Assembly: GCA_047495785.1 (NCBI GenBank)
Contig: JBLDXI010000009.1
Location: 3,658,001 to 3,722,000, forward strand
Reading direction: 5' to 3'
Source: Lepidodermella squamata
Lineage: Eukaryota; Animalia; Gastrotricha
Length of the DNA: 64,000 bases
Part shown: one piece after another, positions 9,175 to 28,810 of the stretch
Layout of the letters: each line of letters starts with the position of its first letter
Numbering within the stretch: position 1 is the stretch's first letter
The notes under the pieces: model-generated
Told to the model about the DNA's origin: nothing
The model's input: only the letters and a program-made list of their open reading frames with translations
Database searches by the model: none
Position numbers and translations under genes: made by a program

Positions 9175-9856
9175 TTAGATTCGACGGAAGCCCTGAAAAA
9201 AAACAAGAAATTATATATTCAGTGGGAAGGAAAGGGATTAAGAGTTATGACTGAAAAAGGTAGAAAGCAAGCGAGCTCATGTGACTTTCCGGAAGAAATA
9301 AAATTTTATCGAACAGATTTACCTTAGCCATAGCTGCTCGCATTCGATCGGTGATATCGCTGTCTTTCATGCGCTTGTTGAGCGAGCGGAGCGGGTGCGG
9401 TCTGTCTAACCGGCGTTTCTGTTCCTCCTGCTCATCGCTTTCGTGTTCGTCGCTTTCTCGTACATCGCTCGCATCACCAGAGAAACGATTTTCATAAGTG
9501 CGCTGGTTGGTGTAACCGTGCAAATCGCCTCGCTTGCTATCCTCGTTTCGCTTGCTGTCCTCGTTTCGCTTGCTATCTTCTCGCTTGCCCAGCGCGATCC
9601 GGCTGGATGGTCGTGCGTCTTTACGCTTTTCCTCTACATGATCTTCTTCCTCGTTGCTTTCATCGGCAAAGAAGTTACCAAAGGCGCGGCGTTTGTCGAA
9701 AAGTTTGTCGTAATTAATCAGGTCCAGCGTTCGCTTGCTGTCTTCGCTACGCTTACTATCTTCGTGACTGTCAAGCATGACAGCCTGACTTGGGGTCGCA
9801 AGCACCATTAAGGCAACAATGGCTGAGATAAAGACAACGGATTTATAGCTATCCAT
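9175..9856 (-). CDS. P1 secreted multi-peptide prepropeptide (2 exons; intron 9193-9322)
   Basis: Signal peptide MDSYKSVVFISAIVALMVLATPSQA; >10 KR/RR sites; 5x EDSKR; SSRIAL-GKR amidation site; RFSGDASDV. AAG|gtaaat...tttcag|GGC gives C-terminus AMAKGFRRI*. Confidence 0.85.
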
Positions 9857-10137
9857 ATTATCCGATAAAAAATTATTTAGTTATAAAATAATAAAAGCAC
9901 CGACTTTAGACAAAAATTCGAAGTTTTTTGCTTTATTAATACCCTTCGTCAAATCAGCTGTCAAAATGTCACAATTTTAACAGGTTCAATTACCAAATAT
10001 CACGTGGTATTGGTTCACCACGCCTCCATGATGTCTGTTTTCGGGAAAGAAGAGCCAAATGATGATCAGATGCAAACATTTTATTACGCAAAATAAATCA
10101 TGTTCATCATCACGGGGCTCAACATTTTTAACCTAGT

Positions 10138-10320
10138 TCATCCGAATACTGGTCGCAGAAGGCGCACAACGCCATGATGATAAGGCCGCTTTTCGATTAT
10201 AGCTGGTACGACGTCGTCATCCATCGTCAGGAATCCGCCCATCAGGGGCCAAGAGTCAGCACCAAAGATTATCAATGGCATTGTCAAGAATGCCAAAAGA
10301 AATATGCGAGAAACTTCCAT
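10138..10320 (-). CDS. P2 prepropeptide (60 aa), predicted PYHHGVVRLLRPVF-amide
   Basis: MEVSRIFLLAFLTMPLIIFGADS signal, acidic spacer, KR, terminal G*. Confidence 0.8.
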   Translation of the reverse strand: MEVSRIFLLAFLTMPLIIFGADSWPLMGGFLTMDDDVVPAIIEKRPYHHGVVRLLRPVFG

Positions 10321-10729
10321 AGCCACGAAATAAGCTATAATTAGCGTAAAAACAAAAATGTCCGAGGTCAAAATACGCAAGTTTCTGTGTTTTAGAAGAA
10401 TGACTATGGCAGAAGGTTTGCGAGTTTTGAGTCGGGCTTATATTTAGGTGTCTGTCCTTTATTCAAGAGTTGTCGAGACAGGCGTGTCCAGAAAACACTT
10501 CGCCGACTATTTGAGTGGAAAAATTATCACGTGGGCGGAAATCATTCAGAGAATCAGGTGAGCAGCACGCCGAGACCCACGCCCCTCCGTACAGAACCCA
10601 TTAAGAGAGACAGTATAATCCCCCGACTTAATATCAGTAATCTATTGATCTGAAAAGACTCGATACAAAAAGAAAACATGTTTTTATTTGTATTTATCGA
10701 AAAACTGGACAACGATGAGCTTTTAATAG

Positions 10730-10957
10730 TCAACTAAAAAATGGCAACATGCGACTTGTCTCGATCGAATTAGACCGCCTCATTAGCATCCCGTCGTCAC
10801 CTGCCACATCGTTGAATTTGACAGCGTTTGGCGAGACAGGAAGCCAGTTTTCAGCGCTGACCAAAGCGAAGTCGCTGTTTAGGCCATCGTTAGGCGTGGG
10901 TGCCGATAAAATAACAGCTGTGAAGGCGATCAGCGTGACCAAAATAACTTTGAACAT
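10730..10957 (-). CDS. P3 prepropeptide (75 aa), box-A variant
   Basis: MFKVILVTLIAFTAVILSAP signal; KFNDVAGD; RR site. Confidence 0.75.
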   Translation of the reverse strand: MFKVILVTLIAFTAVILSAPTPNDGLNSDFALVSAENWLPVSPNAVKFNDVAGDDGMLMRRSNSIETSRMLPFFS

Positions 10958-11456
10958 CTTCGGACCGCTGCACGTGCTCGAACAGGAAACCTTGGACATG
11001 CAGCTTATCAACTGCTAATCCTGCCAAACAAAATGTGTTCTAAAAAAAGTTATACAGCATAGACATAGGATAATGACATAAAAATATTTTCAAGGTTGGA
11101 TTCATAATTCACGCTCGAAAGCTTGAAGAAATCGTGTTGCGAATAGAATGGGCCATGCCTGTGCACATTTGTTCCGCAAACTATGTAATGATAGGTTTCC
11201 ACATGAGCCGCAAATGAAAAAATCGATGTTGAGCCAATTTAGAGTTTTCAGCTCTCATCTTTCAGCCTCATTGTTCTCGCTGTTTGATTACCCTGAGGCC
11301 TTTTCTCACGGAAGAATGAAACTGTGAAACAAAGAAGTGATCCGAATACAACACACATTTTATTAAATTTTCACCGTATTGATTTACAAAGAACTCGAAA
11401 AATAATAAATAGGAATGGCGGTTATATGTTCACAAGGTTGATAACAAATTTGTGGG

Positions 11457-11780
11457 TCAGCGGCGCCTTCCGTAGACCAGCTGAGGAAACTTGACCTTGT
11501 GGCCTTGACGTTTCACGAGACCTTGATCGTCGTCTTCATCTGTGAGCCAAGAGTTTGATCCATCTGCATTGCCTCCATCATTGTTAACATACCGAAAGTC
11601 CGTTTCGATACCATCCGTTTCGCCCGCACCGCCAAACTTCCGCTTGTGCAGGTCTCGATGATGATCTTGAAGATCGTCCAAACTGAACTCAAAAGGCATT
11701 ACATCTTCATCGGCAATAGACGGAACGACGAGATAGCAGAACAATATTGCAGCCATGGAGTAGAAAACTAGCGAAGCCAT
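11457..11780 (-). CDS. P4 prepropeptide (107 aa)
   Basis: Signal; KR-KFGGAGETDG...ADGSNSW; KR-QGHKVKFPQLVY-GRRR (possible pGlu...amide peptide). Confidence 0.85.
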   Translation of the reverse strand: MASLVFYSMAAILFCYLVVPSIADEDVMPFEFSLDDLQDHHRDLHKRKFGGAGETDGIETDFRYVNNDGGNADGSNSWLTDEDDDQGLVKRQGHKVKFPQLVYGRRR

Positions 11781-12592
11781 TCTTATTCTTAGAAAAAAAT
11801 GACTAGGGTGAGTAAAAAAGGGGTAGATTCAAAGAATGGATATTGCGCGTATTATGGTCGGTTATGCGCGCGGCTTAAGCGCTAAGACGAATGCGCGGCT
11901 TTTTTCATTAACCACGGTTCATAAAGTTAATTCCAGATCGTGAAATTCCCGGATTATTAATTTTCTATGCGATTTGTGCGGTCTGATCAGGCAACCACGC
12001 GTAAAAGTTTTTGTCTTGTCCTCTTCTGCCCCACAAATAATTGCGTAATTGGCGGAAAATTATCAGACGAATCATGTCTAGTATGGTAGGGTCACTAAAG
12101 ACTAGTTCTGGAAAAATGCAGAGTGGCCCAACAGCTTCTCTTGTTGGTAACAGATAAAACCAACGAGTTTCGCGTAGATCGTGAATTTAGGACGTGCAGT
12201 TATTTGGGCGTCAGCAATTCACGATATTAAAAGGGCATCGATAATTGCGGTATAAGTGAGCTCCTATCCCCGCATCAACTCAATTACCGGTGTTATCCTT
12301 CCAGGAGTACGTCGTGCTAATGCAAATTTTTTATAAAAGGCCCTTTCATTATGCAGTAGTTGATAATGCGTTAATCTCATCATCAAATATTTGCGGTTTT
12401 TCACGAGGAAATGCGTCGTGTTTGCCATTCAAGAAAGCATCCGTAAATCAAATTTATTAGGGATAAAAGTTCGAATGTCGAGCTAACAAAGAATAGTCAT
12501 TTAATTCACCGAGGGTCATGAAATGAAAATGCCATCGAACTATAATTGTCCTGGGGTCATAGTCATAATAAAAACAACCGGAGTTATCCCAT

Positions 12593-12844
12593 TCAAGGCT
12601 TCCGGAATTTTCTGTTAGAATGGGCTGCTCGGCCGAAACTCATGCCGCTGCGCTTCGGCTTGCTGTTCGGATGTTCATTGCTTTGATCGCTCTCGTCGCT
12701 GTGAGAATGTTCTTCTTCTTGTGACCCTTGTGAATCTTGTGAATCGTCAGCTTCAAGTTCAAGATGACGCGCAGCCTCAGCGCCATCCATCAACACTAGC
12801 GCAAAAACTACTGCAAGTCCAAAAGCCAGAATAAGTTTGTTCAT
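12593..12844 (-). CDS. P5 prepropeptide (83 aa)
   Basis: MNKLILAFGLAVVFALVLMDGAEA signal; acidic Ser/His-rich pro-region; KR-SGMSFGR...RKP. Confidence 0.8.
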   Translation of the reverse strand: MNKLILAFGLAVVFALVLMDGAEAARHLELEADDSQDSQGSQEEEHSHSDESDQSNEHPNSKPKRSGMSFGRAAHSNRKFRKP

Positions 12845-13302
12845 TTTCGGAGAGCTTTCGAAAAACAAGTAAAACTTTGAACAGCTAGTTGTCAATGTGT
12901 TGATGAGAAGAAATCGCGAAACTTATATACTATTAATTTACCTGAGAAATGCGCTCACATGCGGCTTTGCGTCAATTACTGCTAATTAATCAACGTGAGA
13001 TTAAATTCCGGCTTATTGAAGCCCCAATCTCACAACACCTGGAAATCCATCTTAAACAGATTGGCGAAACCCCGCAAGTATTCGATTATCTCGCAGCCTG
13101 TAATCTGGGTGAAAATGCGTAGATTCTTGGAAAAGTGTACGAGCAATCGGAACGGCTGCCAAGTCTTAAAAACTAGGATTATCTGCAGGTTCTGAATTTA
13201 TATAAAGGACCTGGTTTTTACAGACAAGGCAAAAAATGTCATGAAGCCGTGGAAATGTTCATATCCCAAAGTTATAGTCATGTCTTGTCCCCTGGATCAA
13301 AA

Positions 13303-13590
13303 TTAATAAGGGTTCGTCCTTGAGAGACCAATTCGATTGCCGTTAACTTTAGCCATCCAATTAGCTGCTCGCAGCTTGTAGTTGCCAATATTCCGCTTCC
13401 CAGCAACCGACATGATGCTGAGAATCTGCTCATCAGTGAGCGGAGGAGGAGGCTGCTGACGGCCGTGGTGGGAGCCATCGTGATTCTCCTTCACAGCATC
13501 TGAACGAAACGGGATCGGCACTGCATGCGAGAAAACCATGATGACAGCAAAAAGTGTTGCAAAGATAAGCAAGCTGCTAACGCGTGACAT
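13303..13590 (-). CDS. P6 prepropeptide (95 aa)
   Basis: Signal MSRVSSLLIFATLFAVIMVFSHA; QQPPPPLTDEQILSIMSVA-GKR amidation site; basic C-terminal peptide. Confidence 0.8.
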   Translation of the reverse strand: MSRVSSLLIFATLFAVIMVFSHAVPIPFRSDAVKENHDGSHHGRQQPPPPLTDEQILSIMSVAGKRNIGNYKLRAANWMAKVNGNRIGLSRTNPY

Positions 13591-13841
13591 GACCAGGCTA
13601 AAATCGTAAAATTATACCACAAGTGATTTGTGTTGCTTTTCAAAATGAACTCGAAACTCCTTATAACTTCGTCTCCGAACTGTTATTTTATTCTAGTATC
13701 TAGGGAATAGTTCTTTCTTAACGGACATTTTCAACAACAGCCACATGACAATGGTAGGAGTCTGACGTAAGAGATTGATACTGGGAATTAAAATGAAAAC
13801 TGCTGACTATATTGCCTCGGGTGATGCATGATGACATTTAA

Positions 13842-14063
13842 TCAAGGCTTGCGCGCCAATGACTTCAGGTGAAATTGCTTTGCGAAACCGGCACCTCGTT
13901 TTGACAGGAGCATCCTGTCGAATGAAGAAGGCCACATGGGCACTTCGTACATACTGCTGTCGTCGTCATCGTAACCCGCCGCTGCTGTGGCTTCCAGAAC
14001 CAACAGCATGACGAAAACGGCGCACATGGCGTAGAAAATGTTGAAGGAATTGAACGCTGCCAT
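13842..14063 (-). CDS. P7 prepropeptide (73 aa)
   Basis: Signal, acidic spacer, KR-GAGFAKQFHLKSLARKP. Confidence 0.8.
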   Translation of the reverse strand: MAAFNSFNIFYAMCAVFVMLLVLEATAAAGYDDDDSSMYEVPMWPSSFDRMLLSKRGAGFAKQFHLKSLARKP

Positions 14064-14586
14064 TCTATTGACGGTAAACTTTGCTAAAATGTCAGTCTAT
14101 TACAGCAAGAAAAATAAGTTTAAGTTCGGTGCATTCGGCTGGGCGGAGGAAGGGGATGAAAATGGGCCAGAGATTTATGCGAGTCAACCTCAATTTTCGC
14201 AAAACTGTGATAACCTCATAAATAAATTGCTTTTTATTGGCTCTGCGACTGAGAGGGTTGAAATCCCACAAATTCCGCTGAGGATTATCAAAGTAAATTG
14301 GAATAAAATATGCCGCGAGAAACCATAATTATACGAAAAATGTGCGTCATGTGAGAACTTGATTGCAAAATTTGATTTACATTCTTCCAGGGAGTTCATC
14401 CTTTTATTCCTCCTTCATCCCTCGCGTCCTTTCATTCTGACGTCATCGGGTCAAAAAGAATGTTGATGACTGCAATTTTTATTGAAATAACCTAACCAAA
14501 CACTAGGCAGGCATCAAATCCTCTAAATATGATAATCAAGGAAAGCAACAATGGACAGTGACTCATAACAGCACTTGGCTCTAGCA

Positions 14587-14973
14587 TTACAGAACGCCCA
14601 TTCGGGCGATTTTCTGAAATTGGATCGGCCGATAGCCACCTCTGTGCTGAACGGCCTTGATTGCTCGCTTCTCTAGAGCATCCATTTGATCGTCGTCATC
14701 ATCTTTGTCTTCCTCTTCGTCTTGTGAGCGGCCTCGGTAAAACCAAGACTGTGTCTCTCCTGCGTTCTGTTTAGCTATGGCTTCATTGTCAGCGAATTTG
14801 GATTGCCACCCAATTGCGGCATCCCCGGCTCCGAATCCTTTGCCCCTACCAAGCGTCATAAGAGCTAGAATGTCATCGTCTTCATCGTGGCCATAGGCTG
14901 CTGCTTGATGCAATATCACAGATGTGAAGATCACACTGAATAAAGCGATGCGCTGAAGATCCATTTTCGACAT
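14587..14973 (-). CDS. P8 prepropeptide (128 aa), two-box type
   Basis: Signal; KGFGAGD-x19-AGETQSWFYRG; acidic tract; KR followed by a basic C-terminal peptide. Confidence 0.85.
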   Translation of the reverse strand: MSKMDLQRIALFSVIFTSVILHQAAAYGHDEDDDILALMTLGRGKGFGAGDAAIGWQSKFADNEAIAKQNAGETQSWFYRGRSQDEEEDKDDDDDQMDALEKRAIKAVQHRGGYRPIQFQKIARMGVL

Positions 14974-16168
14974 GATTTGAAGAGTAAAAGAGATACTATA
15001 ATAAAAACAGCTATATCAGGTAAGTAAAGGGTACAGGCTAAAAGCTGCGTGGATTTGGGAGGAAGCTGAGTAAAGTTTTAGGCCTCTTGAACAATGATGA
15101 AATAGGACCTCCCGCCAGGATATTAGCACTAGCGGGCGACGTCACAAAACTTGTTATTTGCTTGCAATTATATAGCGATATTATACCTATCTAATGTTTC
15201 GCTTGATCGATCAAGCTTTGCGATGACCATTTTTGCGCGACAACATAATTTGCTGCCCACGAGTGCATACCTGTTTTTAAATTATTCCTGCTGACTTTCA
15301 ACACGCGACGTCGGTTTTGCCCGAGTAGGCGAGAAAGGGCGGGACAACGGGCGCAAAATTACTTTTCGCAGGCGTTTCGCCTATTTAAGGAACCCAAAAG
15401 ATTTCTGCCACTCCTATGCCAATTTTTTCAGAATAAAGAAATGAGCAGTGATGTTGAGGCTGAAAAATGCTATCAGCTTTCATCGACATGTGGAATTCAG
15501 ATATTACGTCTAAAAATAACGGGAGATTATCCGAATTAGAGAATGATGGCTCGCAACTAAGCTGCTACAACTCCGAAAATGATTGCGTGGAGAAATATTA
15601 CTCATCCATCGGGCATCTCTGTCCATACTTTCGAAATTCGACGAATGAGATCTGAAATGACAGTGAAAGCGTTTCTTTGTCAGAGCAATGGATACCACCC
15701 CGCTCCGCATATTATTCGGCATCTTATACTGGAGTCCAGATGATGTGTCACGGCGCACAGCTTTCTCCGCTGTGGAATGCAAATGAATTAGATGGGTGGA
15801 CAATGTTACTTATAAGACATGAATTTAATTTTATTACATTAATATGGAACCTCTATTACCCTTGCTGCATGATGCCTGAATGAATTTTTCACTCAGTCAT
15901 GAAACGATGATGTTGGGCAACCCCGTTAACTGAACGGAATGCGCCTGAAATCAAGTCAATAAGGACATTATGGTTATAGACTGCAACACGCAAGTCTCGA
16001 AACTAAAGACACAGTCCTCATATTCCAGTAAAAAACTAGAACTTGAAAAAACGCAATAGTCTCGCCGACGTTCAGATTTTTAATTAAAAAATGACCTAAT
16101 TCATTGCGAAAGTTTGAAAAATAATATAAGTAATGTGATTCATGTCAAATCATCCGCCCTGGCAGATT

Positions 16169-16660
16169 TCAGTTTCCTTTCATTCCAGATGATAAATCAG
16201 GGTCTTCGTCCATATTCTCTGACAAGGCGATCATTTTACGCCACGCAGCAGCAGCTCGGCGTTCGAAATTGTTATCATAGTCTTGCAATTCTTCTAGCTC
16301 CGCATCAGCGATGCCAGACTTCGTTCGAAAGGCTCTGTAACTTGGCTCGAGGTCGACTGTGTCGCTTGAAGTTTCATCGTCCAGGTTCTCACTGCTCGTT
16401 TTTGCCAATCGGCTTCGAAGTGCGGTTGCTTGACTGAGCCCGTAGCTTTCTTTGCTAGAAACATCGCCTGAATCGTCTCTACCAAGCGATATTTTGTAGT
16501 TCAGATCTGTTGGCCGCAATTTTTCGTTGTCGAAGTTCTCCTCAGAGAAGTCTATGGCGTAGTCAGGTTCTGAAAGTTCATCATTCATGTTGAAAGGGGC
16601 TTGCATGGTTGATCCGAAGCATAGTAGTAAAACTACAAAGAAGAGGGAAGCGTTCAGCAT
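16169..16660 (-). CDS. P9 acidic secreted precursor (163 aa)
   Basis: Signal MLNASLFFVVLLLCFGSTMQA; KISLGR-DDSGDV; RR/RK sites. Confidence 0.75.
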   Translation of the reverse strand: MLNASLFFVVLLLCFGSTMQAPFNMNDELSEPDYAIDFSEENFDNEKLRPTDLNYKISLGRDDSGDVSSKESYGLSQATALRSRLAKTSSENLDDETSSDTVDLEPSYRAFRTKSGIADAELEELQDYDNNFERRAAAAWRKMIALSENMDEDPDLSSGMKGN

Positions 16661-16995
16661 TATATTTGAAAGTTTCCAGAAATGAAAAAAGTGAATATAA
16701 GCACTAAACCACTCTTCACATCACGTCTTTTTGTCTCTTGCTGAATAAAACCGCCGCGTGACATCGGAGGCGTTAAAGTGAGAAACGGAAAAAGCAGTCC
16801 GTTAAAACTTGGGATGAAATATCATTCTGTAACGCATTATTCAAGGAGGTGGCATCGCCAAAAAGTGTGCACTTACGAGAAAGCTAAATGACCTTTAGAA
16901 GCCTAAAACGCCCCGAAACACCCACACAGCCAAAACATGTCAAAAACGTCGTTGCACGTTTATTCCGTTTTCACAAAGAACGCAAAACTCATAGA

Positions 16996-17334
16996 TTAAT
17001 CATTGTCTCTATCACTCCCAGGCCAGTCGCTCTCAGGTGAATCACCAAAGTTTGAATCTTCTCCGCTCTCGAATTTCTCAGCGAAATTCTGCGGAGCAAG
17101 AATCAGCTGATCAATAGACTCTTCATCATAGTCATCAGGCAATGCCTCGTTTCGGAACAAAGACGGAATAACATCTATTAAGGAGGGCATGCGTAGCATC
17201 AAATCGGCCATCTGCTGTCTTCTGAGTTGCTCTGAACCATACTCTGCATTGTCATCTGCTTGAACGTTTATTAGGGTGTTCGCAGAAATTTGTGATGCCA
17301 GCATCACCACTATGACGAGGACTAAAAATGGCAT
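16996..17334 (-). CDS. P10 acidic secreted precursor (112 aa)
   Basis: Signal MPFLVLVIVVMLASQISA; RR; KFESGED...ESDWPG (degenerate boxes). Confidence 0.7.
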   Translation of the reverse strand: MPFLVLVIVVMLASQISANTLINVQADDNAEYGSEQLRRQQMADLMLRMPSLIDVIPSLFRNEALPDDYDEESIDQLILAPQNFAEKFESGEDSNFGDSPESDWPGSDRDND

Positions 17335-17874
17335 TGAAGTATATCGAGAAGAAATAAGCCCTAGTTTGAAGGAAAAATGGATTAGGTACATCCAAGCGAT
17401 AAGAATTGAAGAAAAACGAAAACAATATAAATGCTCATATTACGTCCACGGAGCTAACCATGAGCCCAAATCTCAGAACCGTGTGGCGCAACATGCAGGG
17501 AAGAATTTTTCAACCAGTTAATTTAGGAAACGAGTTTATTCACTCAGGGTGTCCACTCACCATTCATTGAAACTTTGTCGTAGTAGGTAGGCGTCGATGG
17601 ATGAGTTGGCATGCAGCCTTCACTTGAACTTCAGTGTAAACGGTAATGAATTTGGGACGACGAACTGCTATATCCGTTCCGCAAAGGTGACCTTTCATTA
17701 TTTTACAGCTATTTATAAGTAGGAGCGAGCGAAATTGTTGATTGCGTCTTTTTAATTTTCCGGTTTATAACAGCATGAATGATTTTATTATTCAATACAA
17801 TTTGTCGTTTATTGCACTGATTTCATCGCAGCTGCTTTCTCTTCATCGTCAAGTGCGCTGCAAATAAAAATCGT

Positions 17875-18848
17875 CTAGAGAAACATTAAGTGTACAGAAT
17901 GTTGGCGGAGGGGGAAAGTTTCGTTTTCTTGATGCTTTTCGATCACCACTGAAGTTGCCGTCATTAAAGGAATCGTGTCCGGCACTTTGCTACTGTAATT
18001 TGCCACCTGTGAGAGACACATGGATGTTGTCGTCAAAGAGATGCAAACAAGATGCAAGATGAAAGATACCGTATTTCTCGAAAATTTACCGCGGGCTATA
18101 TTTATGAACAAATGATTTTTGATTCGGGTTGTATTAGGGAGTGGGGATATATACGGGTGTGCTGTTTAATTGCGAATCATCACAAAAAGCCGCGAGCAAT
18201 TCGTATTAAGACGACGTTTTTAGATTGTTTTATTTGTCGATTCAGTGAAAAAGTGAAAAAGTTACAATTTCTTGATGTTGTGATTTTGTGATTTTGTGAA
18301 CTGGTGATGTTGTAGCCATTCCTTGACGCATCGACGATCGACCTTGAAGACTCTCGAGGCATCGTTTGCTGAGATTGCTTTTGCATGATCAGCCACGCGA
18401 ATTTTGTATGCGAGGGAATACTTGCGGTGCCGCTTTCGCTTGTCTTCTTCGGACACCTGGACGGAATCTTGAAGACGATCAGGAGAGCCAGCCATCATCG
18501 ATTCCAGAAGGTTAAAACGATTAAGAAGGATATGAAAATGTTAAAATAAAACTCTGTGTCTCAGCTAGTGAATGCTGAATGGGCATTTTCTGCTGGCTTA
18601 TGAATGGTGCCAAGATCAGACGTTGCGAAGCTGCTTACGCGATAGCTAATCACTGATTACGATAATGCGTCATTAATAAGGCTTTTCTTTTGTTCCAACG
18701 CATGCTTCGCCCAAATTAAAATAGCTGTGGTACAATTTCGAGGCCTGGGTTAAATATGAACAAACGATTTTTTCGTCGGGTTGTATTAGGGAGCGGGGAT
18801 ATATACAGGTGTGTCGTATATTTTCGAGAAATACGGTACATGATTCAT
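17875..18848 (-). pseudogene. Probable 28th precursor disrupted by the pogo-like insertion
   Basis: Removing the element and one TA gives ATG AAT CAT GTA TCT TTC...: MNHVSFILHLVCISLTTTSMCLSQ...VVIEK...FL* (67 aa), on the same strand as its neighbours with a signal-like N-terminus. Confidence 0.5.
18067..18838 (-). mobile_element. Non-autonomous pogo-like DNA transposon with Brinker-type HTH remnant
   Basis: TA-ccgtatttctcgaaaat ... attttcgagaaatacgg-TA; ~60-bp subterminal direct repeats; ORF 18262-18498 RKYSLAYKIRVADHAKAISANDASRVFKVDRRCVKEW. Confidence 0.85.
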
Positions 18849-19604
18849 TTCGCAAACACAAATGGACTGAACTTATCTCGCCATCAGATGAACAAATGTA
18901 AAGCATTTCCGGCGTGCGTCAAGACGCCGCAAATGTCCCACGTCAAATCACGAGGCATCAGAGCAAAAATGTCCATGCAAAAGAACGTCATTAAGTTTGA
19001 TGTTGTAGGCTGAACAAAATCTTCAACCTGATTAGTCATTTGGTCGTAGCCATGATTCCGCCTTATTGCTGCGTGAATCCACGAAAGCTTCGTAAAAAAC
19101 GGTAGGAACTGATTTTCACGAAATAGTTGGAAATGGCCCTCATAGGGTCGATTCAAGCAGCAAAAGGCGGAGTCATGGCTACGAACAGCTGACCAGTCGA
19201 AGGAAAACCAACGAAAATATTTTTTATTTTTGTCCTCATTTGATATAAAGGTTGCGGATTTTTTGGTTCTGCTTAAAACCTATTAATTGATATAATTTGC
19301 TGCTGCTCATTAAATTGAATGTATACCATTTATGTTAAAAATTCGACGCTGAGCTTTGCTGACATAAATGATTTATTTTCAAGCCATCCTCACAGTGAGG
19401 AATATTCAACACTGAGGTCAAATTGGCCAAAAAAGACCTAACAAGTGATCTTGCCCCAGTTTCTATTTTTGGCAAATAAAGCAACGCAGATGATATTTGC
19501 TGAATGTTGGCTATACTCGTCAAGTCGCCGAAATAAGTATTAAGGGCCGTGATTTCTAGACGGAGCACACTTTGGGACAGACGATCAAACGGGCGACATA
19601 TCTA

Positions 19605-19832
19605 TCACTCGATATCCATAGCCAAGCCCTCGCCGAATCGATCTTGTAGTTTTTGAGGGAATATGATGTTCGATAATATGCCAGCGCCGTCGAATTTCCC
19701 GTGGCTGTGTAGATCAGTGTCTTGGCTATCTTCAAATTCTTCGTGGTGCATAGGCGCCCGGTTCAACGCCATCACAGCTGCCATGAGGGCGAACAAAACC
19801 AATAAATTGAAGCTAGAGATTAAACTCGACAT
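19605..19832 (-). CDS. P11 precursor (75 aa), box A
   Basis: Signal MSSLISSFNLLVLFALMAAVMA; HGKFDGAG. Confidence 0.75.
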   Translation of the reverse strand: MSSLISSFNLLVLFALMAAVMALNRAPMHHEEFEDSQDTDLHSHGKFDGAGILSNIIFPQKLQDRFGEGLAMDIE

Positions 19833-20175
19833 TTTACAAAAAGATTGGGGCTTGTAATGAGAATGCAAAGTTGGGCAAAATTTATTCTACTTATAAATTT
19901 AGTGCGTGGAACTACGCAAATTTTCTTGACCATTGAATTTAAAGCGTTGTTAATTCTTAACTGTTCTAGTGAGATAATTGCATTACAAAACGGCACTTAT
20001 TGGTGCAAAAGTATATGAAAATACACGCAAGTTTATTTTAAATTCACAATAATTACAATCGCCATTTTCTCTACGGCTAAAAGATGCTGAAACGTCAAAT
20101 GAGCGTGATGATTTTATTCGCTTCGAATCAGATGTGTTGGATGGACGTGGTCAGACCGGAAACGTAGAAATGCAT

Positions 20176-20397
20176 TCATCGCTCATCGCTGTCTTCTAGC
20201 GGCGAGAGCGGGGCGTAATTTCCTGGTTTCGCTCGGCCTCCTACACCATAGAACCAGCCTGCGGTTTTGCCGGCTGCGCTCTCCATCATATTATCAGTTG
20301 GCAACTCGACGCTCACTTGATCCACGTCACCAGCGTTGTCGAATCTCGCTGCTATTGCTGAAACGAGAAGAAATAACAGCAACACAGAGGCTAGCAT
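20176..20397 (-). CDS. P12 precursor (73 aa), two-box type
   Basis: Signal MLASVLLLFLLVSAIAA then RFDNAGDV...AGKTAGWFYG. Confidence 0.85.
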   Translation of the reverse strand: MLASVLLLFLLVSAIAARFDNAGDVDQVSVELPTDNMMESAAGKTAGWFYGVGGRAKPGNYAPLSPLEDSDER

Positions 20398-20772
20398 TTG
20401 AAAGCTACAACTTCGAATCGTGGTTGCATTCAGGTCGAAAAAGTAGAAATGTTTACCAGAAGAAATGAGCCAGACGGGCTTTCTATTCAATGCATTCTTT
20501 CATTTTGATTGCTCCGCCCACTCCAGAGGAACGGACCTCTTGAGACTTTTTGTCATTAATCTGCCCCTCCGTGATCGCCGATCAATCTAAGAGTCGAAAT
20601 AATGAGATTCGCTGAGAAAACCTTCAAAATAAAATAATAGCGTAGTTCGGTGAGATTTCGGTGGGTTAAGGCTTTGAGTGGAAACTAACATTGCACCATA
20701 CATCAACGTGGTTTTCCCGTTATTTTCACAAAAATAAAATTTTATTAGCCTTGGATTACGCCTTCATAAGTT

Positions 20773-21198
20773 CTATTCGTCTTCAAAATTATAGTGGCCG
20801 TACCACCAACCGTCTGTTTGGCCGGAAGGACTCATCATTTGCAATATCCAAGTCAGCTTTTTAGCCAGAGATGGCCGGGGATCGACAAATTGTGAACGAG
20901 TGCGCATCTTCGGTTGGCGAATGACAACTGGTAGTTTTTCGAGAACATCGATGTCAACCCCATCTCTGTCACCGTGAAGCACTGATGCTACGTTGCCGAA
21001 ACCAGTGTACTTCCCATGATAATGACCCCGAGAATCATTGTGATCCGAATCATCGCCATCCGCCTCTTCTTTGTGCTCGTGAGATGATGATGAATCGTCG
21101 TCGATTGGTCGTGGCTGAACGCCTTGGCTAAGGCATACAAGTAATAGATGAAGGGCGACGATAAGAGGAGCAATTTTAGCGTGCATGATTATTAACAT
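20773..21198 (-). CDS. P13 precursor (141 aa), two-box type with long spacer
   Basis: Signal; acidic/His tract; HGKYTGFGNV...SGQTDGWWYG. Confidence 0.85.
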   Translation of the reverse strand: MLIIMHAKIAPLIVALHLLLVCLSQGVQPRPIDDDSSSSHEHKEEADGDDSDHNDSRGHYHGKYTGFGNVASVLHGDRDGVDIDVLEKLPVVIRQPKMRTRSQFVDPRPSLAKKLTWILQMMSPSGQTDGWWYGHYNFEDE

Positions 21199-21736
21199 CG
21201 TCTATGAAGTGAAATAAGTCTCTGTTTATCAGTACTTGGTCACTCAATCCATTCAAGCATGGTGTTTGTCCGTAGCTAATGGGTGAAATAGCGAATCAGG
21301 AGCCCACGCCTCTCATAAATCATACGTCTCATTGAGTAAAGACAAGTAGTATAGAACACATTTACCTATATTTCAGCGAAATAGTACTACGTGATCCAGA
21401 ATCACCATCGATAATCTATCTGAAATGATAGGTGAAGATGTAAAAGCTCGTGTTATAATGACCATGTCTGTGCCTGGCGGGCCGGATAGTTGAAGGTACA
21501 TGTTTTAGGTTCGACTGATTTAGCTGTTTCCCCCGCAACGGCGGAAAGCTCCTTCTCAATTCTGCCACTCACTTTAAAAGGCGGAAGTAATCGACTTTCC
21601 TTTGCAGTCATAATTAAAATAATGTTTCAATAGCCACTGTAATATTTTATTGCTCAAATGAATTTTAATAGAACTACGCTAAATTTAACAGGTTCCTTGA
21701 TGATGAATAATTTCGAGTCTCACGCCTACGTTAAAT

Positions 21737-22063
21737 CTAATTCCTGCTGTTTTTGCTCTGTCTGATAACGAACATCTTGAATCGGTTCGAATTCGGTGAT
21801 CGTAGAAGGGCAAAGCTCGCAGCGCGAGGAAAGTCATCGCTATCTTCCTGCTGAGTGGTAGACTTAGATCCACGGTTGCCGGTGCCGTAGTACCAACTGT
21901 CAGTGTCTCCCGCAGGCATATCCATGTCTCCTCCCAAGTTTTTTTCAGCAAAGATAGGCGACACATCACCAGAGTTTTTGTATTTAGCAAAGGAGCAGTT
22001 TGATTGCCTGAAAAGTAGTAGAACCACCAGCAAGGGGCTAAAGATTGAAGAGAACATTGCCAT
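21737..22063 (-). CDS. P14 precursor (108 aa), two-box type
   Basis: Signal; AKYKNSGDV...AGDTDSWYYG; basic tail. Confidence 0.85.
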   Translation of the reverse strand: MAMFSSIFSPLLVVLLLFRQSNCSFAKYKNSGDVSPIFAEKNLGGDMDMPAGDTDSWYYGTGNRGSKSTTQQEDSDDFPRAASFALLRSPNSNRFKMFVIRQSKNSRN

Positions 22064-22493
22064 TGTTGGGTTATAATCTTTCGCTATCGGGCGCAATCGG
22101 TACGATTACAATCAAGGAAATGGAATCGTTCGATTGAGTTTGTTTCCAGAATGTGGCCACTGGCTACGCATTCTGTCTGACTGTGCCTGTTAGGGGAAAT
22201 CGTTGCTAATCTGTCAATTCTCAACGGTATCCAATATTTATTTTGTATCGGCACGAATCTATGATGCCTGTTCTCCTACGTTGGCCAAGGGGCACACTTT
22301 TTACCGCTGGGACTTTAAATTAGCTATTTACAGAAATCGCAGTTTATCTGGGCTCTGATCTGAATTTTTAATTAGGGATAAAGGACAGGACAAACGCTAT
22401 CTAAAATGATAGATCAACTAACGAGTTATTAACATATTCAAGCTATCACACAAAAGATATTTAGACTGAAGCATCTGATGCGTATTCCGAGGC

Positions 22494-22826
22494 CTAGAAA
22501 GCCCCCATAGAAAGTCTCTTTGAAAAAGACTTCCGGTACGCTTTGATCTGAGCAGCCTTTCGCTGCAGCTCTTTTCGCTCTCTTTCTGTCCTAGCATTGG
22601 CAATCATCGCCTGTAAATCATCATCCTCAGCGGCTTGCTTTATCAGTCCAGCCAGAGTCTTTTTGTCATTGGCACCGTACCACCAGGCGTCTGTCGGGCC
22701 GGATAATGGGGCTTGCCTTCTAACCAGATGCCGCAGACTCTCATCTTCGGGAGTTCCAGAGGTTTGCGCGGTAAGGGCGGAACATGAAATAAGGATTGGC
22801 AGCAGAAGTAACCAGCTGGAACTCAT
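22494..22826 (-). CDS. P15 precursor (110 aa), box B only
   Basis: Signal; RR-QAPLSGPTDAWWYGAND-KK; helical basic tail; KR. Confidence 0.85.
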   Translation of the reverse strand: MSSSWLLLLPILISCSALTAQTSGTPEDESLRHLVRRQAPLSGPTDAWWYGANDKKTLAGLIKQAAEDDDLQAMIANARTERERKELQRKAAQIKAYRKSFSKRLSMGAF

Positions 22827-23505
22827 GGTTAAAAAAGCAACCTAGAAATCTAGATATGAAAAGACTGAATAGACTTGAAAATTAGGTCGCAGCAAAATTG
22901 ATAAAAATCGTGATATTCCACTTCAACACATCATAGCATTCGTGAGGTACATTCCACTGTTGCTTTCTGAATGCATGTAGGAGGCGTTTGCGTGATTGCT
23001 GATTGTGAGTGGGACGTTCGTGGTCAAAGGGGGGCCGTACACAGGGAAATCAATTCTCAAATGTTCTCGAAATACTTATAATAAATATCTCATTCTCTAG
23101 ATTTTGAGTGACTTTCAAGTATCAGCGGATAGATTTTGGAGAATTTTATTCGCTAGCATCATTTCCCGTTCCATGGCGCGAGAAAGCCCTCTCGGTGGGC
23201 ATTCGGAAACAAATCGGCTGAATGGGCGCTTTTAGGCGGAAATCAGACTAATTGTACAAAGGCGCTTCTTTTTCACGCCAATTGTAACGCCGCTTTCAGT
23301 TTCTTAAAATGCCTGTAATCAAATCTGTGTGAACGATTCTTCGCTTCGGTGAACATCTTCCTATTAGACACTTGAAGCTAAATTAGGGAATGCGTATGCC
23401 AAGAAAACAGCGGAATAGAACTTGCTCTTTATTTCTCGTATCGAATATAGTTCATATACCTCTTCAAACAGAGGGTGTGAATGGTATTAAGTTGGAATGG
23501 TTCAT

Positions 23506-23799
23506 TCACAGTAATCTCTTGACTGCAAGCAATCGCATAGGGATTTTTCGTGGTAGATAAGCCGCAAGGGCTCGCTGGACATCCTCATTTCGCTGTTCGA
23601 GAGGCAAGTCTTTCCCAGACTTGTAATTCCCATACCACCATCCGTTAGTTCGACCAGCCGAGTTAGGATACACAACTGATGGATCTAGTGGGCTAACAAA
23701 GCGAGAACTGACATCCCCAGCTCCGGTAAATTTAGCCGAAACACTGATCGCCTGAAGGAAGAAGGAAGTGATCGCTAATATGACAATTGCAGACGGCAT
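23506..23799 (-). CDS. P16 precursor (97 aa), two-box type
   Basis: Signal then KFTGAGDV...AGRTNGWWYG. Confidence 0.85.
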   Translation of the reverse strand: MPSAIVILAITSFFLQAISVSAKFTGAGDVSSRFVSPLDPSVVYPNSAGRTNGWWYGNYKSGKDLPLEQRNEDVQRALAAYLPRKIPMRLLAVKRLL

Positions 23800-24085
23800 T
23801 TTTTTTTAGCAAAAATCGCAATGAAGTAGGCATATAAGATCAAATAACTACACCAAAATTACACCTAATAGCCTTTGATGTGTTTATTATTTATTCATCG
23901 TACGTGGGGCAACGCAGCGAAGAGCACTTCTCGAATGTCTCGAATTTTCTATCAGGCGTAAATCGGTTCATACCCACGCAATGATGATCAATCAATTGTT
24001 ACAACATACGATGCCAGTTTATTTTGAATAAACGGATCAAAAGAAAGGTTTCATACTTCATCATATAAGTCTGATCCATGTCTGT

Positions 24086-24391
24086 TCAAGCATCCTCGGG
24101 GCTGATCACCTTTAGGTTGTAGGTGTACTTTCGAAACGGAGACCTGAAGCCGTTTGCTTCGTTCTTGAAGACGTAGACATAACGCTTCCTAGAACTTGAC
24201 CGCTTCTTGCGTGAGTAACTCCAATCAGTCGTCCTGCCAGCCGTGCTTGCAAATCGGTTCCGCATAATGGGTCCGTATTCGTAATTGCCAACCCTTCCAG
24301 CACCTGTAAACTTTGCGTGCAAAGATGGTGGCATAACGGTTAATACGAGCAAACAACAACAGACTGCAATTGTAAAACTTGACAGCTTCAT
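24086..24391 (-). CDS. P17 precursor (101 aa), two-box type, basic
   Basis: Signal MKLSSFTIAVCCCLLVLTVMPPSLHA then KFTGAGRV...AGRTTDWSYS-RKKR; RKR. Confidence 0.85.
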   Translation of the reverse strand: MKLSSFTIAVCCCLLVLTVMPPSLHAKFTGAGRVGNYEYGPIMRNRFASTAGRTTDWSYSRKKRSSSRKRYVYVFKNEANGFRSPFRKYTYNLKVISPEDA

Positions 24392-24575
24392 TTTGCAAAA
24401 GATGACCAAGCGAATTGAAAAATATGTGTTTTTATGACCAATCTTGTTATGATGTGATGCCTCCCTATCCCCAGAAGTAATCACATTTCAACACTGCATT
24501 TTTCAATCAATGCATTTCTTTATTTTGAAACATATGCAATAGGAATAATCAATACTAGTACTACCATGCGTTTTT

Positions 24576-24911
24576 TTACTTCATATTTGGTCTAAGGTAT
24601 GTGCCATATTGCCATCCATCTGTAAGCCCAGCAGCTGAGTCTTCGTATTCATCGGCCTCCGCCAGGTTTAGAGGATAACGCTGTAAGATGACCGACTCGG
24701 CATCTCCCGCGCCTGATAGCTTCCCAAATGGCTCCAGGAACCTCATCGCATCAGAATTGTCCTCCCGAAGAAGGAAATCCTCGAAGTCGTCATTTGGCCT
24801 CGCCACCACGGAGGAGGCTAGTTGCATAAAAATTATCGCTATCAAAATCATGGCTGGCCAGTCTACTACTACTACACGGGGTTGAGCGAGTGATAAACAG
24901 CGGCGATGCAT
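24576..24911 (-). CDS. P18 precursor (111 aa; alternative start 24851), two-box type
   Basis: Hydrophobic MILIAIIFMQLASSVVA; GKLSGAGDA...AGLTDGWQYG. Confidence 0.8.
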   Translation of the reverse strand: MHRRCLSLAQPRVVVVDWPAMILIAIIFMQLASSVVARPNDDFEDFLLREDNSDAMRFLEPFGKLSGAGDAESVILQRYPLNLAEADEYEDSAAGLTDGWQYGTYLRPNMK

Positions 24912-25068
24912 TGATTTTAATATAAATCATCTCTGACATCATCACACGTCTGTCTCGAGAGGGTCCACGCAGTGTCCACAACAAAATGCACACCTGAGAG
25001 CATACTTGCATCGTTTATTTAGCTAATTCAATATTGAATATAATATAAAATCGCAGGCAGATATTAAT

Positions 25069-25371
25069 TCAATGCTGGCCGAAAAACCACCCATCCGTGA
25101 GGCCTGCAGGGCTCTGATCATCAGCTAAGGCTATGCGTTGCATTATTCCCTTGAAAACAGCCGCTCGCATGCCATTCGATGACGCAAACATTGACGGCAA
25201 TTCAGCCCGGTGCATTTCAGCCGATGCATCGTGATTTGTCGCATCTTCATCACTTTCCCCACTTACATCGCTAACAAATCGCAACCGGGTTAGGGTTGGA
25301 CGGGCGTTGTTAGGGTAAGGCACGCATATGAAAACGATAACACATAAGGTCAAACACAAAGAATGATTCAT
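25069..25371 (-). CDS. P19 precursor (100 aa), box B at C-terminus
   Basis: Signal; RFVSDVSGE; PAGLTDGWFFGQH*. Confidence 0.8.
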   Translation of the reverse strand: MNHSLCLTLCVIVFICVPYPNNARPTLTRLRFVSDVSGESDEDATNHDASAEMHRAELPSMFASSNGMRAAVFKGIMQRIALADDQSPAGLTDGWFFGQH

Positions 25372-25602
25372 CTTTCTCAGTAAAAAAACGTGAAACGAAT
25401 AAATAAACCTCCGAATTTTGATTGATGAGAAAAGATTAACTTTTTAATTATGGGAATTGCTTCCTAATAATCCGAAAAATTACTTGCGGGGTTTATCATC
25501 TTTCATCTTTCAAGCATCCAGGTTGCACAGTATGAAGCAAGTTTATTGGGAAAAACAAGCGGATACACGATTGAATATATGCATTTTGGTGATCTATGTC
25601 CA

Positions 25603-25845
25603 TCAATAGTCATCCATTTTAAGTTGTCTGGGCAATTGATGGCTCCAGTCGTCGTCGTTCCAATAGCTGCGCTTCACGTCCCCGGAATATGCTGCCTTTC
25701 CGCCGCGGCGCTTCACCAGCCCAGCGTCGCTGAATGACTTGCGTTTGAAGCCGCGAAACCAGTCGTCATCGTCGGCGTTTGCCGAGAAAATTAACCCTAG
25801 CACCAGAGCAGCCACGGCTAACCAATAAATCACTCGAAAATGCAT
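25603..25845 (-). CDS. P20 multi-peptide precursor (80 aa)
   Basis: Signal; DDDDWFRGF-KR-KSFSDAGLV-KRR-GGKAAYSGDV-KR-SYW. Confidence 0.85.
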   Translation of the reverse strand: MHFRVIYWLAVAALVLGLIFSANADDDDWFRGFKRKSFSDAGLVKRRGGKAAYSGDVKRSYWNDDDWSHQLPRQLKMDDY

Positions 25846-26209
25846 CCTTTTTCAAGATTAATTCTGCAAAATAACAATCATATAGCTTTTTTACTGTAAA
25901 CAATATAGGAGAGAAAATAGATAAGATGACCAAAAGCAGGAAAATAATCATCGGCTAGCTTCTAATGTATCTCTTTGTAATAATTCGTTTTAGAAATATT
26001 CCGAAAATGATTGCGGGTGAGAGTACTAACATTTGTCTCAAAAGACCGCCCTTATTTCTCGGCTTATACAATTTTAGCTAAAAGTACAAATAACAAAAAT
26101 ACACACCGGCTCCAGGGTTATTTATTCATCAACTCGAATGACAGTCTAATTATCATTTTTTTGACAGTCACCAGTTCGAAGAAAGGTCAAATATTTTGTC
26201 CGGTTTTAT

Positions 26210-26398
26210 TTATGACGAAGAAACGCGTTTCGCTTTGTCCAGTAACTTTGAAATACCCAGTTGGAAGCCGTCGTTTCTCGGTGGATGGGGCAGATGCTCA
26301 CCGCTCGAATCGAAGTCCTCGTAGACCTGCGAAAAAACTGTCCTCATGGCTATAGCCTGGACAGCCATCAATAGCAATATCGCTACCTGAGCCAGCAT
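26210..26398 (-). CDS. P21 precursor (62 aa), degenerate two-box
   Basis: Signal MLAQVAILLLMAVQAIA; DFDSSGE...NDGFQLG; KR. Confidence 0.65.
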   Translation of the reverse strand: MLAQVAILLLMAVQAIAMRTVFSQVYEDFDSSGEHLPHPPRNDGFQLGISKLLDKAKRVSSS

Positions 26399-26853
26399 AA
26401 TTTCATTGCACCTCAAAATTATTTTCATAATAAAGGTAGTGCCCTTTAATATATGCCTCTACAACTCTAAAATGCCGGTGCAGCGATTTTTTGCTAGTAA
26501 ATAATTTATAATAAAAAGCGCGCAAAAATCACTGACGAAACATGATTAAGGATTCATTGATTCTACGGCAGCAATCAATGTCCCCTTCCGACTAAGGGCC
26601 GAAGTTAATTTTTTCTGTAAAAAATAATAGGGAAAAAATATTGAAAATTTTCAATTTTTTATTCATGACTTACGAATAACAATAGACATATCAGCGTGAA
26701 GAGAGTTTACAGAAAAAAATAACGTGAAAAATAAAGTGCAAGTCAAATTTCACAGGTGCGATGGAAAAAAAATAGATTTTCGCGAAAAATATAGTACGGG
26801 AAAAAATTGAAAATCTATGAGCGAAATTAATTTGCGGTTTTATTGTCTTTATT

Positions 26854-27198
26854 TTACGAATCTACTTCGTAATCATTCTCGCTAAAAAACGCCGAGCGCT
26901 TCTTCGTATCGCCCGAGTCAACAAATTTACTGCCACGGCTGCGCTTTTTCGTATCGCCAGAGTCGATGAACTTGCTACCGCGGTTTCGTTTCACGTAAAA
27001 ATCGCCGTAATCTTCGAGGCTGCTGCCCGACCGCTTTTTGACATCTCCCGAGTCGATGAATTTACTGCCGCGGACTCGCTTCATATCGCGGTAGTAACTG
27101 CGTTTCACCAAACTGAAGTCGTCATCGCTCCAGCAGTAACAAGCGGCTATTAGCATTGCTAGGACTAATAAGGCCAAGTTGATGGGGTGGATCATCAT
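26854..27198 (-). CDS. P22 multi-copy peptide precursor (114 aa)
   Basis: Signal; three KR/KKR-flanked copies of xRGSKF(I/V)DSGD(V/T). Confidence 0.9.
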   Translation of the reverse strand: MMIHPINLALLVLAMLIAACYCWSDDDFSLVKRSYYRDMKRVRGSKFIDSGDVKKRSGSSLEDYGDFYVKRNRGSKFIDSGDTKKRSRGSKFVDSGDTKKRSAFFSENDYEVDS

Positions 27199-28810
27199 TT
27201 CAGCAAAGTTATATATAAGTTATATCCTATACTACAAAATTAAAAATCTGAATCATTGATGAATAAAATCCATGTTTCAAATTTAATTAATATACAGCCG
27301 GACTTGAGTGGGAAGAGACTTTACTATTGGATCGTGTAGTATCGATTTCAGAAGCCTTTTCGCTTTATTAAATAAAACTTTGGCATCATGAAATATTAAA
27401 AACGACCAGGTATGAAATGCGAGATGCTGACTCACGCGGTCCGGTATCAGTCGCCATCTTTTTGTCTAATAACGCCCTCCGATTTTTTTTCGACCTAAAA
27501 ACAAACACACGTGACGTAACCTGCCAAAAATTGTCCAGAGCCGAGGGATTTTTTCAGACAGGGTTCTTATTTCAAAGTAATTTGCTATAGCGACAATTAT
27601 CTAGGGATTTTTCTAGAGTAAACTGCACTTTTCAGAAAAATATCCGCCCTCAGCTTTTTGAGTGGGAGAAATTTCTGGAGAAATAACTATTTGACAGAAA
27701 ACAGACATTTAACGAAAAAAAATACCGACTGATTTTGAACTCGTTCAAATTATACCGAATGCAAATGAGTAATTACCGCGAGCAATATGTTCGATGCGCG
27801 TCATAATTATCCGCACTTTGCGGCTATGATCTAGCCAGCGAGCGTCCTGTCCCAGTGGACTGGTTTTGTTTTGCCACAACTTATCATGTTTTACGCCGCA
27901 GTGGTTCAGAAAACGCGCAGTAATTTATTAACACAGGGGTCACAAGCGCGCATATATTGCGGCGAATAATATGCGAAAACAACAATTTGTCATCATTTAA
28001 AATCCGAGGTCAAATTTATATTTCTTCGCAAACTATAAGCTCACATAAGCAGGAGGCTTTCGAAAAACGAGCTAAAGATTACTAGCGAAAAAGGTGGATA
28101 ATTAAAAGTGGAAAAAATCAGAACAGAATTAATTTTCTTTAGAAAGTAGCCAAAAAAATAAAAATTGCCAGTGTTGCTACTTATCGGGATTATTTCGAAA
28201 CAAAGCCATATACAATTTGGGTACCTAGCCCGATCAACGATCAACGAGAAATATTACGACAGGAGGATATTTTTTTAAAGAATATGGATTTTATTTTGAA
28301 AATCGAAGCATGATATAAGTATCCTAATTCCAATCAAGCAGAATTTCCTTAAGGGTGACTTTCTTTCCAGAGGCTTGTCAAGGTCTTGATGCGGTAATAC
28401 TGTCAACGCGACTTATAGCATGAGAGAGGGAAAACGGTCACTTTTAATGCGACTTGATAGCAATTTTTTTAACCAATTTACGGCTTCGGTGTTCCAATGT
28501 TCTCAAAGCTTACATTTGAAAGTAATGTTAGTCTGTGTCAGTACCAAACGAATTTCAATTGTTTATTTTCAAATAATATACGAGACCGGGCGATTCAAAA
28601 TCAATCAAAATAATATATAAAATATGTAGAGAAGTATTCGAATGGAAAAATCGAAAATCTGCAAAGGTTCCAAACTTCTGCCACTGATAATATTTACAGG
28701 AAAAGTGTTTCAACTCTGACGTGAAATGATAACGTAGGTGCAATAATAATAAAAGGAGATGACAAAAGTCAAATATTGGTACATCCACGTAGCCGACCGT
28801 TATGCCTGTG

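Follow-up and report, generated by a model that had tools for sequence, protein, structure and literature searches.

Two short AG-centred motifs in a tandem array of putative secreted peptide precursors of the gastrotrich Lepidodermella squamata

Background

Precursors of the frog dermaseptin and Hydra arminin types consist of a signal peptide, an anionic middle part, a Lys-Arg site and a cationic, variable peptide at the C-terminus; their genes evolve fast, are restricted to particular taxa and occur as tandem duplicates. Conotoxin-type frameworks, which form large paralogous families, keep fixed anchor positions (cysteines) with highly divergent residues between them. Two-site peptide hormones, the ligands of class B G-protein-coupled receptors, come in a range of lengths that includes ∼35-45 residues. 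For gastrotrichs, a literature search found no description of peptide signals or secreted effectors. Here, these systems are compared with a tandem gene array of the gastrotrich Lepidodermella squamata, which lies in a stretch of 64,000 nt hereafter called the window (assembly GCA_047495785.1, contig JBLDXI010000009.1, positions 3,658,001 to 3,722,000, forward strand). A subset of the array genes encodes one or both of two short peptide motifs, box A and box B, which in eight genes are separated by a spacer of near-constant length.

The array probably represents an old, tandemly arranged gene family that is confined to one lineage and encodes secreted precursors of prohormone-like layout. On this reading, box A and box B are modular peptide motifs that delimit one released peptide. 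Motifs, gene structure, transcription and purifying selection are established by the analysis described below.

Two motifs in a tandem array

The array occupies window positions 9245..31776 (minus strand) and comprises 27 single-exon genes of 60-203 amino acids, all on the same strand. A hydrophobic core, signal-peptide-like by inspection, lies within residues 1-30 in each of the 27 open reading frames (ORFs), and in most genes a poly(A) signal (AATAAA or ATTAAA) is found 30-160 nt past the stop codon. Intergenic gaps are mostly 157-700 nt. Mature parts of the proteins contain 0-2 cysteines, most of them none, and the conserved cysteine pattern of framework toxins is absent. The gene numbers 1 to 27 are the P-numbers of an earlier reading of the window made from sequence alone, referred to as the original prediction.

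Box B is defined as [AS]G-x-T-[DN]-x-W-[WFY]-Y-G and box A as K-F-x-x-[AS]-G-D. As a regular expression, box B matches nine times, always on the minus strand and between 14.7 and 30.0 kb, against an average of 0.06 matches, and never more than 1, in 200 block shuffles. A hidden Markov model (HMM) of box B separates 10 members (E 7e-7 to 8e-5), on which it was itself trained, from the next six-frame segment (E 0.23; 1262 segments). For box A, 12 minus-strand matches occur in ORFs with a signal peptide, versus ∼3 expected over all six frames. Chance as the origin of the motifs is excluded by the shuffles and by the HMM separation, and low-complexity sequence or a wrong reading frame was likewise rejected as their source. 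At least 11 genes contain box B or a strong box A, and weaker box A-like matches in genes 9, 11 and 20 bring the number to about 14. The ORFs, both boxes and seven spacings of the original prediction were recovered exactly as claimed, and two tests it had named, enrichment over shuffled controls and an HMM, here run on the window, bear the motifs out.

The seven spacings, counted as residues between the AG/SG dipeptides of the two boxes, are 18 in genes 4, 12, 14 and 17, 19 in gene 16, 20 in gene 8 and 24 in gene 18. As originally described, these spacers are essentially unalignable, the four of 18 residues having 0-2 identities over their last 11 positions, and they are free of dibasic sites; the latter property carries no weight, because only 0.57 pairs would be expected by chance. 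Gene 15 is an eighth, degenerate two-box member with a spacer of 17. Over these eight genes, the coefficient of variation (CV) of spacer length is 0.12, compared with 0.49 for the part before box A and 0.46 for the part after box B. Comparison of the length variance of the spacer with those of the two flanks gives p = 5e-4 and 6e-5 in F-tests on log length, and 0.026 and 0.075 in Levene tests. Spacer length is moderately constrained in the two-box subgroup. Conserved spacing, as claimed in the original prediction, holds for these eight genes and fails for the motif pair at large, since box B lies >50 residues from a degenerate box A in genes 13 and 19, and gene 25 and the lone box A units deviate as well. 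The near-constant spacing probably reflects ancestry in part and a moderate length constraint in part.

The box-bearing genes, in window coordinates, are the following.

Gene 4, 11457..11780, minus strand: acidic pro-piece ending in Lys-Arg; box A at 11619-11639; 18-residue spacer; degenerate box B (ADGSNSW) at 11538-11567; C-terminal part with an acidic stretch, Lys-Arg and a 13-residue unit with Gln start and Gly-Arg-Arg-Arg end, in an amidated-peptide layout.
Gene 8, 14587..14973, minus strand: box A variant GFGAGD at 14821-14835; 20-residue spacer; box B at 14734-14763; then an acidic stretch, Lys-Arg and a cationic C-terminal peptide.
Gene 11, 19605..19832, minus strand: one weak box A (KFDGAGI) at 19677-19694; box B absent.
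Gene 12, 20176..20397, minus strand: box A at 20326-20346, right behind the predicted signal-peptidase site; 18-residue spacer; box B at 20245-20274; mRNA contig 20016-20410 with its poly(A) tail at 20016.
Gene 13, 20773..21198, minus strand: degenerate box A (KYTGFGN); ∼56-residue spacer with Lys-Lys; box B at 20797-20826, 7 residues from the stop; transcript contig 20783-21203.
Gene 14, 21737..22063, minus strand: box A at 21965-21985, at the predicted signal-peptidase site; 18-residue spacer; box B at 21884-21913; basic C-terminal tail; transcript contig 21697-22118.
Gene 15, 22494..22826, minus strand: degenerate box A (QTSGT) at the predicted signal-peptidase site; 17-residue spacer with Arg-Arg inside it, 5 residues ahead of box B; box B at 22674-22703, followed by Lys-Lys; transcript contig 22421-22850.
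Gene 16, 23506..23799, minus strand: box A at 23713-23733, at the predicted signal-peptidase site; 19-residue spacer; box B at 23629-23658; cationic C-terminal part, predicted helical; AATAAA 72 nt past the stop.
Gene 17, 24086..24391, minus strand: box A at 24293-24313, at the predicted signal-peptidase site; 18-residue spacer; box B variant at 24212-24241, directly followed by Arg-Lys-Lys-Arg, which bounds a predicted 34-residue peptide.
Gene 18, 24576..24911, minus strand: acidic pro-piece; box A variant KLSGAGD at 24702-24722; 24-residue spacer; box B at 24603-24632, 8 residues from the stop.
Gene 19, 25069..25371, minus strand: box B only, at 25078-25107, 2 residues from the stop; X3 transcript contig 25086-25346.
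Gene 20, 25603..25845, minus strand: two short box A-like units (…DAGLV and …YSGDV) bounded by Lys-Arg or Lys-Arg-Arg.
Gene 22, 26854..27198, minus strand: three box A units SKF[IV]DSGD[VT], each directly followed by Lys-Lys-Arg, in a multi-copy precursor layout.
Gene 25, 29953..30360, minus strand: three dibasic-bounded box A units, and a last unit after Lys-Arg that fuses both boxes via one AG (29974-30015).

Three other genes of the array have recognisable features. Gene 1 (203 amino acids, 9245-9856, minus strand) encodes numerous short acidic units, each closed by Ser-Lys-Arg (E-D-S-K-R, N-E-D-S-K-R), and is a candidate multi-copy precursor. Genes 23 and 24 (28811-29047 and 29496-29768, minus strand) form a separate pair that contains neither box and shares an acidic run after the signal peptide and the motif D-K-V-D-S-K-R-W-M-S.

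Transcription, selection and age

Transcript contigs were derived from whole-animal RNA. Genes 12, 13, 14, 15 and 18 are covered by X2 contigs with poly(A) ends, as unspliced units of ∼420-440 nt, and genes 12, 13 and 19 by X3 contigs. The transcript of gene 13 begins with 22 non-genomic bases, joined at a pyrimidine-rich stretch ending in AG, 5 bases before the ATG (21199-21225, minus strand). This suggests a trans-spliced leader; a full-text literature search with the putative leader sequence gave nothing relevant. Between genes 14 and 15, RNA contigs also cover 22154-22455 at gene-like depth, one of them ending at 22455 in a plus-strand run of A. A transcript from the plus strand or an artefact of assembly could explain this signal, and a convincing ORF is absent there.

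Comparison of the window with other runs and the alternative haplotype gives 15 synonymous and nine non-synonymous differences, with 24% synonymous expected (P = 7e-5). Counting only the spacers and the regions ahead of box B gives 11 and six (P = 4e-4). Three indels were seen, all outside coding sequence. The carriers of the boxes are real, transcribed genes under purifying selection, spacers included. In DNA run X1, two haplotypes can be distinguished at 23406-23551 (seven differences) and 24236-24348 (three differences). Most of these differences fall in the 3′ untranslated region (UTR) of gene 16, and those in coding sequence are three synonymous changes and one in a signal peptide.

At the DNA level, the only alignable part of the paralogues is a 29-nt piece of box B shared by genes 13 and 15. 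Therefore, the duplications are old, with saturation of all sequence outside the boxes. The signal peptides, the UTRs and the DNA between the genes are unalignable to the same degree as the spacers; an unalignable spacer is thus no evidence of targeted hypervariability. The original prediction had considered a hypervariable core between the boxes, and diversifying hypervariability specific to the spacer was rejected because of this uniform divergence; moreover, the spacers evolve under the purifying selection described above (11 versus 6).

Box positions and predicted products

In genes 12, 14, 16 and 17, box A starts after the hydrophobic core, the residue at -1 being Ala and that at -3 Val, Leu, Ser or Ile. 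In gene 15, a degenerate box A occupies the same signal-peptidase-type position, and in gene 4 box A follows Lys-Arg. By the -3/-1 rule, box A is the predicted start of the mature peptide. Box B tends to the other end: only 2-8 residues separate it from the stop codon in genes 13, 18, 19 and 25, and basic residues follow it within 0-7 positions elsewhere, as Arg-Lys-Lys-Arg (gene 17), Lys-Lys (gene 15) or single basic residues (genes 8, 12, 14 and 16). It would thereby mark the end of the predicted released unit. A dibasic site also precedes box B by 5 residues in gene 15 (Arg-Arg) and by 11 in gene 13 (Lys-Lys). Dibasic-bounded peptide units, as expected of prohormones, are clear in genes 20, 22, 25, 4 and 17. 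A Gly before the basic site is present in gene 4 (Gly-Arg-Arg-Arg) and arguably in genes 8 and 12, and absent in gene 17 and in the box A units of gene 22.

A third module characterizes genes 4, 8, 14, 15, 16 and 17, where an acidic stretch, often with Lys-Arg, leads to a basic hydrophobic C-terminal segment. In gene 4, the 13-residue Gln…Gly unit before Arg-Arg-Arg has the layout of a pyroglutamyl, amidated peptide.

Similarities also exist between the boxes themselves. The eight residues after AG in box A and box B align with a mean BLOSUM score of -1.1, compared with -9.4 +/- 1.6 at random offsets, and share a pattern of one beta-branched residue, two small polar residues and three hydrophobic or aromatic ones. 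In hhalign, the two blocks come out in register (P = 0.0012, probability 19%). The two-box unit may consist of two diverged copies of one AG-centred repeat, as in the units of genes 22 and 25. If so, the spacing is an old repeat period.

Cleavage sites and released products, like any role in signalling or defence, are inferred. Signal peptidase, or a cut after the Lys-Arg closing an acidic pro-piece, would expose box A as the N-terminus. The following 17-24 residues would be uninterrupted by a dibasic site, and the stretch from box A to box B, for lack of such an internal site, would stay in one piece. Box B would close the unit, next to basic residues or the stop codon. With box A at the start, an uninterrupted spacer and box B at the end, one peptide of ∼35-45 residues would be released, flexible and cysteine-free, conserved at its head and at its aromatic tail G-W-W-Y-G. 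From six members, a separate cationic C-terminal peptide would arise beyond an acidic stretch. Sister genes would use the boxes separately: box A alone in dibasic-flanked units of 9-12 residues, at most four of them in one gene, and box B alone in a C-terminal peptide behind a dibasic site. The spacing would be partly inherited from a two-box ancestor, possibly of two adjacent copies of an AG-centred repeat, and partly kept by a length constraint.

Structure prediction and searches for relatives

AlphaFold predictions, which rested on shallow alignments, give no secondary structure for the core alone, with a predicted local distance difference test score (pLDDT) of 55.6. In full-length gene 16 protein, residues 2-24 form a helix (pLDDT 91), residues 25-60 are coil (pLDDT ∼50) and two C-terminal helices span residues 67-81 and 89-96, the block holding most of the former having a mean pLDDT of ∼80. 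Neither prediction contains a loop or clasp in the core, and the loop or cyclised structure envisaged in the original prediction thus finds no counterpart in a predicted fold.

Searches for relatives covered domains, proteins, DNA and literature. Ten proteins of the cluster, eight of them box-bearing, have no significant match in Pfam. Word-index searches with gene 16 and with an 11-sequence alignment returned nothing at E <= 10, and a profile of seven cores gave 0 matches at E <= 0.001 against 1.84 billion representative proteins. The protein collections apparently lack this genome's own proteins, as judged from the COQ6 protein encoded in the window, which was not returned. An exact look-up of gene 16 in assemblies found no relatives. 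In Joint Genome Institute (JGI) metagenomes, the DNA pattern for [AS]G-x-T-x-G-W-W-Y-G gave 36 matches, none family-like and none with an upstream box A; all were rejected as long unrelated ORFs, GC-rich DNA or ORFs that are too short. A full-text literature search for the motifs produced nothing relevant. In protein-language-model features, the nearest named clusters to gene 16 are the hormone precursors PDH, DH31, gastrin, galanin and NPFF (0.85-0.90), a weak lead as to general class.

Interpretation and alternatives

Old tandem duplicates of a prohormone-like precursor, with the boxes at the two ends of a released peptide, probably offer the best explanation of the array. Several points weigh against it. 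The peptide products and the signal cleavage are predictions; cleavage is uncertain at the single basic residues after box B in genes 8, 12, 14 and 16; and Gly-basic ends of the amidation type are inconsistent among members. The length test flatters the spacer, because the flanks are acidic and of low complexity and some tails are cut by stop codons. Support for an internal repeat is weak, given the hhalign probability of 19% and blocks anchored on AG by hand.

A possible but less favoured explanation invokes ancestry only, with a functionless spacing that simply keeps the length of the founder gene where indels are rare. Indels are generally much rarer than substitutions in coding sequence, and the two-box subgroup is clustered in 14 kb. 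In addition, at least four length changes (17, 19, 20 and 24) occurred among eight genes, to which the gross exceptions of genes 13, 19 and 25 must be added. This reading is countered by the flanks, which changed length several-fold over the same divergence (CV 0.49 and 0.46 versus 0.12), and by the saturation of all other sequence.

A bipartite ligand, suggested in the original prediction, is rather doubtful. Here, one receptor would bind the two conserved ends at separate sites, and the linker would have a fixed length and a sequence that tunes specificity for each paralogue. The motif pair is real and spacer length far less variable than that of the flanks; spacers are unalignable between paralogues yet each is under purifying selection within its gene; and the predicted ∼35-45 residues fall in the range of two-site peptide hormones. 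The lack of dibasic sites in the spacers, which would also suit such a ligand, is expected by chance (0.57 pairs). However, both boxes also occur alone as dibasic-flanked units, they are fused without a linker in gene 25 and stand >50 residues apart in genes 13 and 19, and AlphaFold predicts coil (pLDDT ∼50-56). It is improbable that the array represents a new class of bipartite ligands, with a head K-F-x-x-A-G-D and a tail …T-D-G-W-W-Y-G held ∼18 residues apart and a linker diversified for the receptor or target of each paralogue. If such a class exists, each paralogue would address its own receptor or target. A dedicated enzyme that cuts or joins both AG boxes is less likely still.

Rather unlikely, too, are defence precursors, whose active product would be the cationic C-terminal peptide, while the stretch running from the first box through the second would serve as a conserved pro-region of mostly acidic character. 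In 6 of the ∼11 box-bearing genes (4, 8, 14, 15, 16 and 17), an acidic stretch leads into a basic, hydrophobic segment of 13-50 residues at the C-terminus, and the helices 67-81 and 89-96 predicted in gene 16 protein would fit this function. Against it, genes 12, 13, 18, 19 and 25 end soon after box B without a cationic tail, yet keep the boxes and are transcribed. Furthermore, no other part of the proteins is as well conserved as the boxes, and a pro-piece that is discarded would not usually show this.

The weakest alternative proposes, by analogy with ribosomally synthesised and post-translationally modified peptides (RiPPs), that a processing or cyclising enzyme recognises the two boxes and either excises or modifies the core. 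This is highly improbable: its only support is a formal layout of two AG-holding boxes around a variable stretch of near-constant length, whereas the box A units of gene 22 run straight into Lys-Lys-Arg with no core, so that box A is product or cargo rather than a mere recognition site, those of gene 25 are likewise dibasic-bounded and do not form a removed leader plus core, box B occurs without box A (gene 19, and genes 13 and 15 behind dibasic sites), no candidate modifying enzyme was recognised among window ORFs of >=130 amino acids, and a loop is not predicted structurally. RiPP-like or ring-forming chemistry in the array is thus unsupported.

As prohormone-like precursors, the genes would provide gastrotrichs with a concrete family having recognisable motifs and predicted products of 9 to ∼45 residues. 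The family shows that, after very old tandem duplications, short linear motifs can be all that is left of homology, and constitutes a small natural test of selection on the distance between motifs. A new biochemical principle is not revealed on present evidence.

Genomic surroundings

The window is eukaryotic, and its composition (GC content 0.37-0.48, mostly 0.40-0.45) loosely fits the 43% GC published for the L. squamata genome (PMC11660948). Runs that contain this stretch are dated 2014, 2015 and 2024. A full-length U1 small nuclear RNA gene lies at 46752-46910 (minus strand; Rfam RF00003, 107.9 bits), and the genes outside the array are ordinary (COQ6-like, WD40 F-box, kinase, RING). The best named matches of the window COQ6 are animal proteins at ∼35% identity. 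A metagenome protein is 62% identical to it, with conserved gene order: from 51.8 to 62.5 kb of the window, the order WD40 F-box, COQ6, small ORF, Med20-like, kinase, RING is the same in the metagenome contig of this relative, where the genes are as compact as in the window. This contig, from the only relative of the genome found, stops ∼20 kb before the expected position of the array.

Within the array, a gap of 2.2 kb between genes 10 and 11 houses a 78-residue ORF (18262-18498, minus strand). By eye, it resembles the N-terminal DNA-binding domain of pogo/Tc5-type transposases, and we take it to be a possible transposon remnant.

Comparison with known systems

With conotoxin-type frameworks, the array family has in common fixed anchors, divergent residues in between and many paralogues. 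Its anchors, however, are AG-centred linear motifs, with no disulfides and no predicted fold. With precursors of the dermaseptin and arminin types, it has in common the layout of six of its members, the taxon restriction, the tandem duplication and the fast evolution. The difference lies in the conserved parts, which are two short boxes in the mature region and not the signal peptide or pro-region; moreover, half of the members have no cationic tail.

Invertebrate multi-copy neuropeptide and prohormone precursors differ from the family in that none of the searched collections contains a sequence relative of it, in the lack of clear dibasic or amidation signals around box B in most two-box members, and in the location of the box genes in a 27-gene array. 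They resemble it in the signal peptide, the acidic spacers and the small size, in the short repeats set between Lys/Arg pairs (genes 20, 22 and 25) and in the Gln…Gly-Arg-Arg-Arg unit of gene 4.

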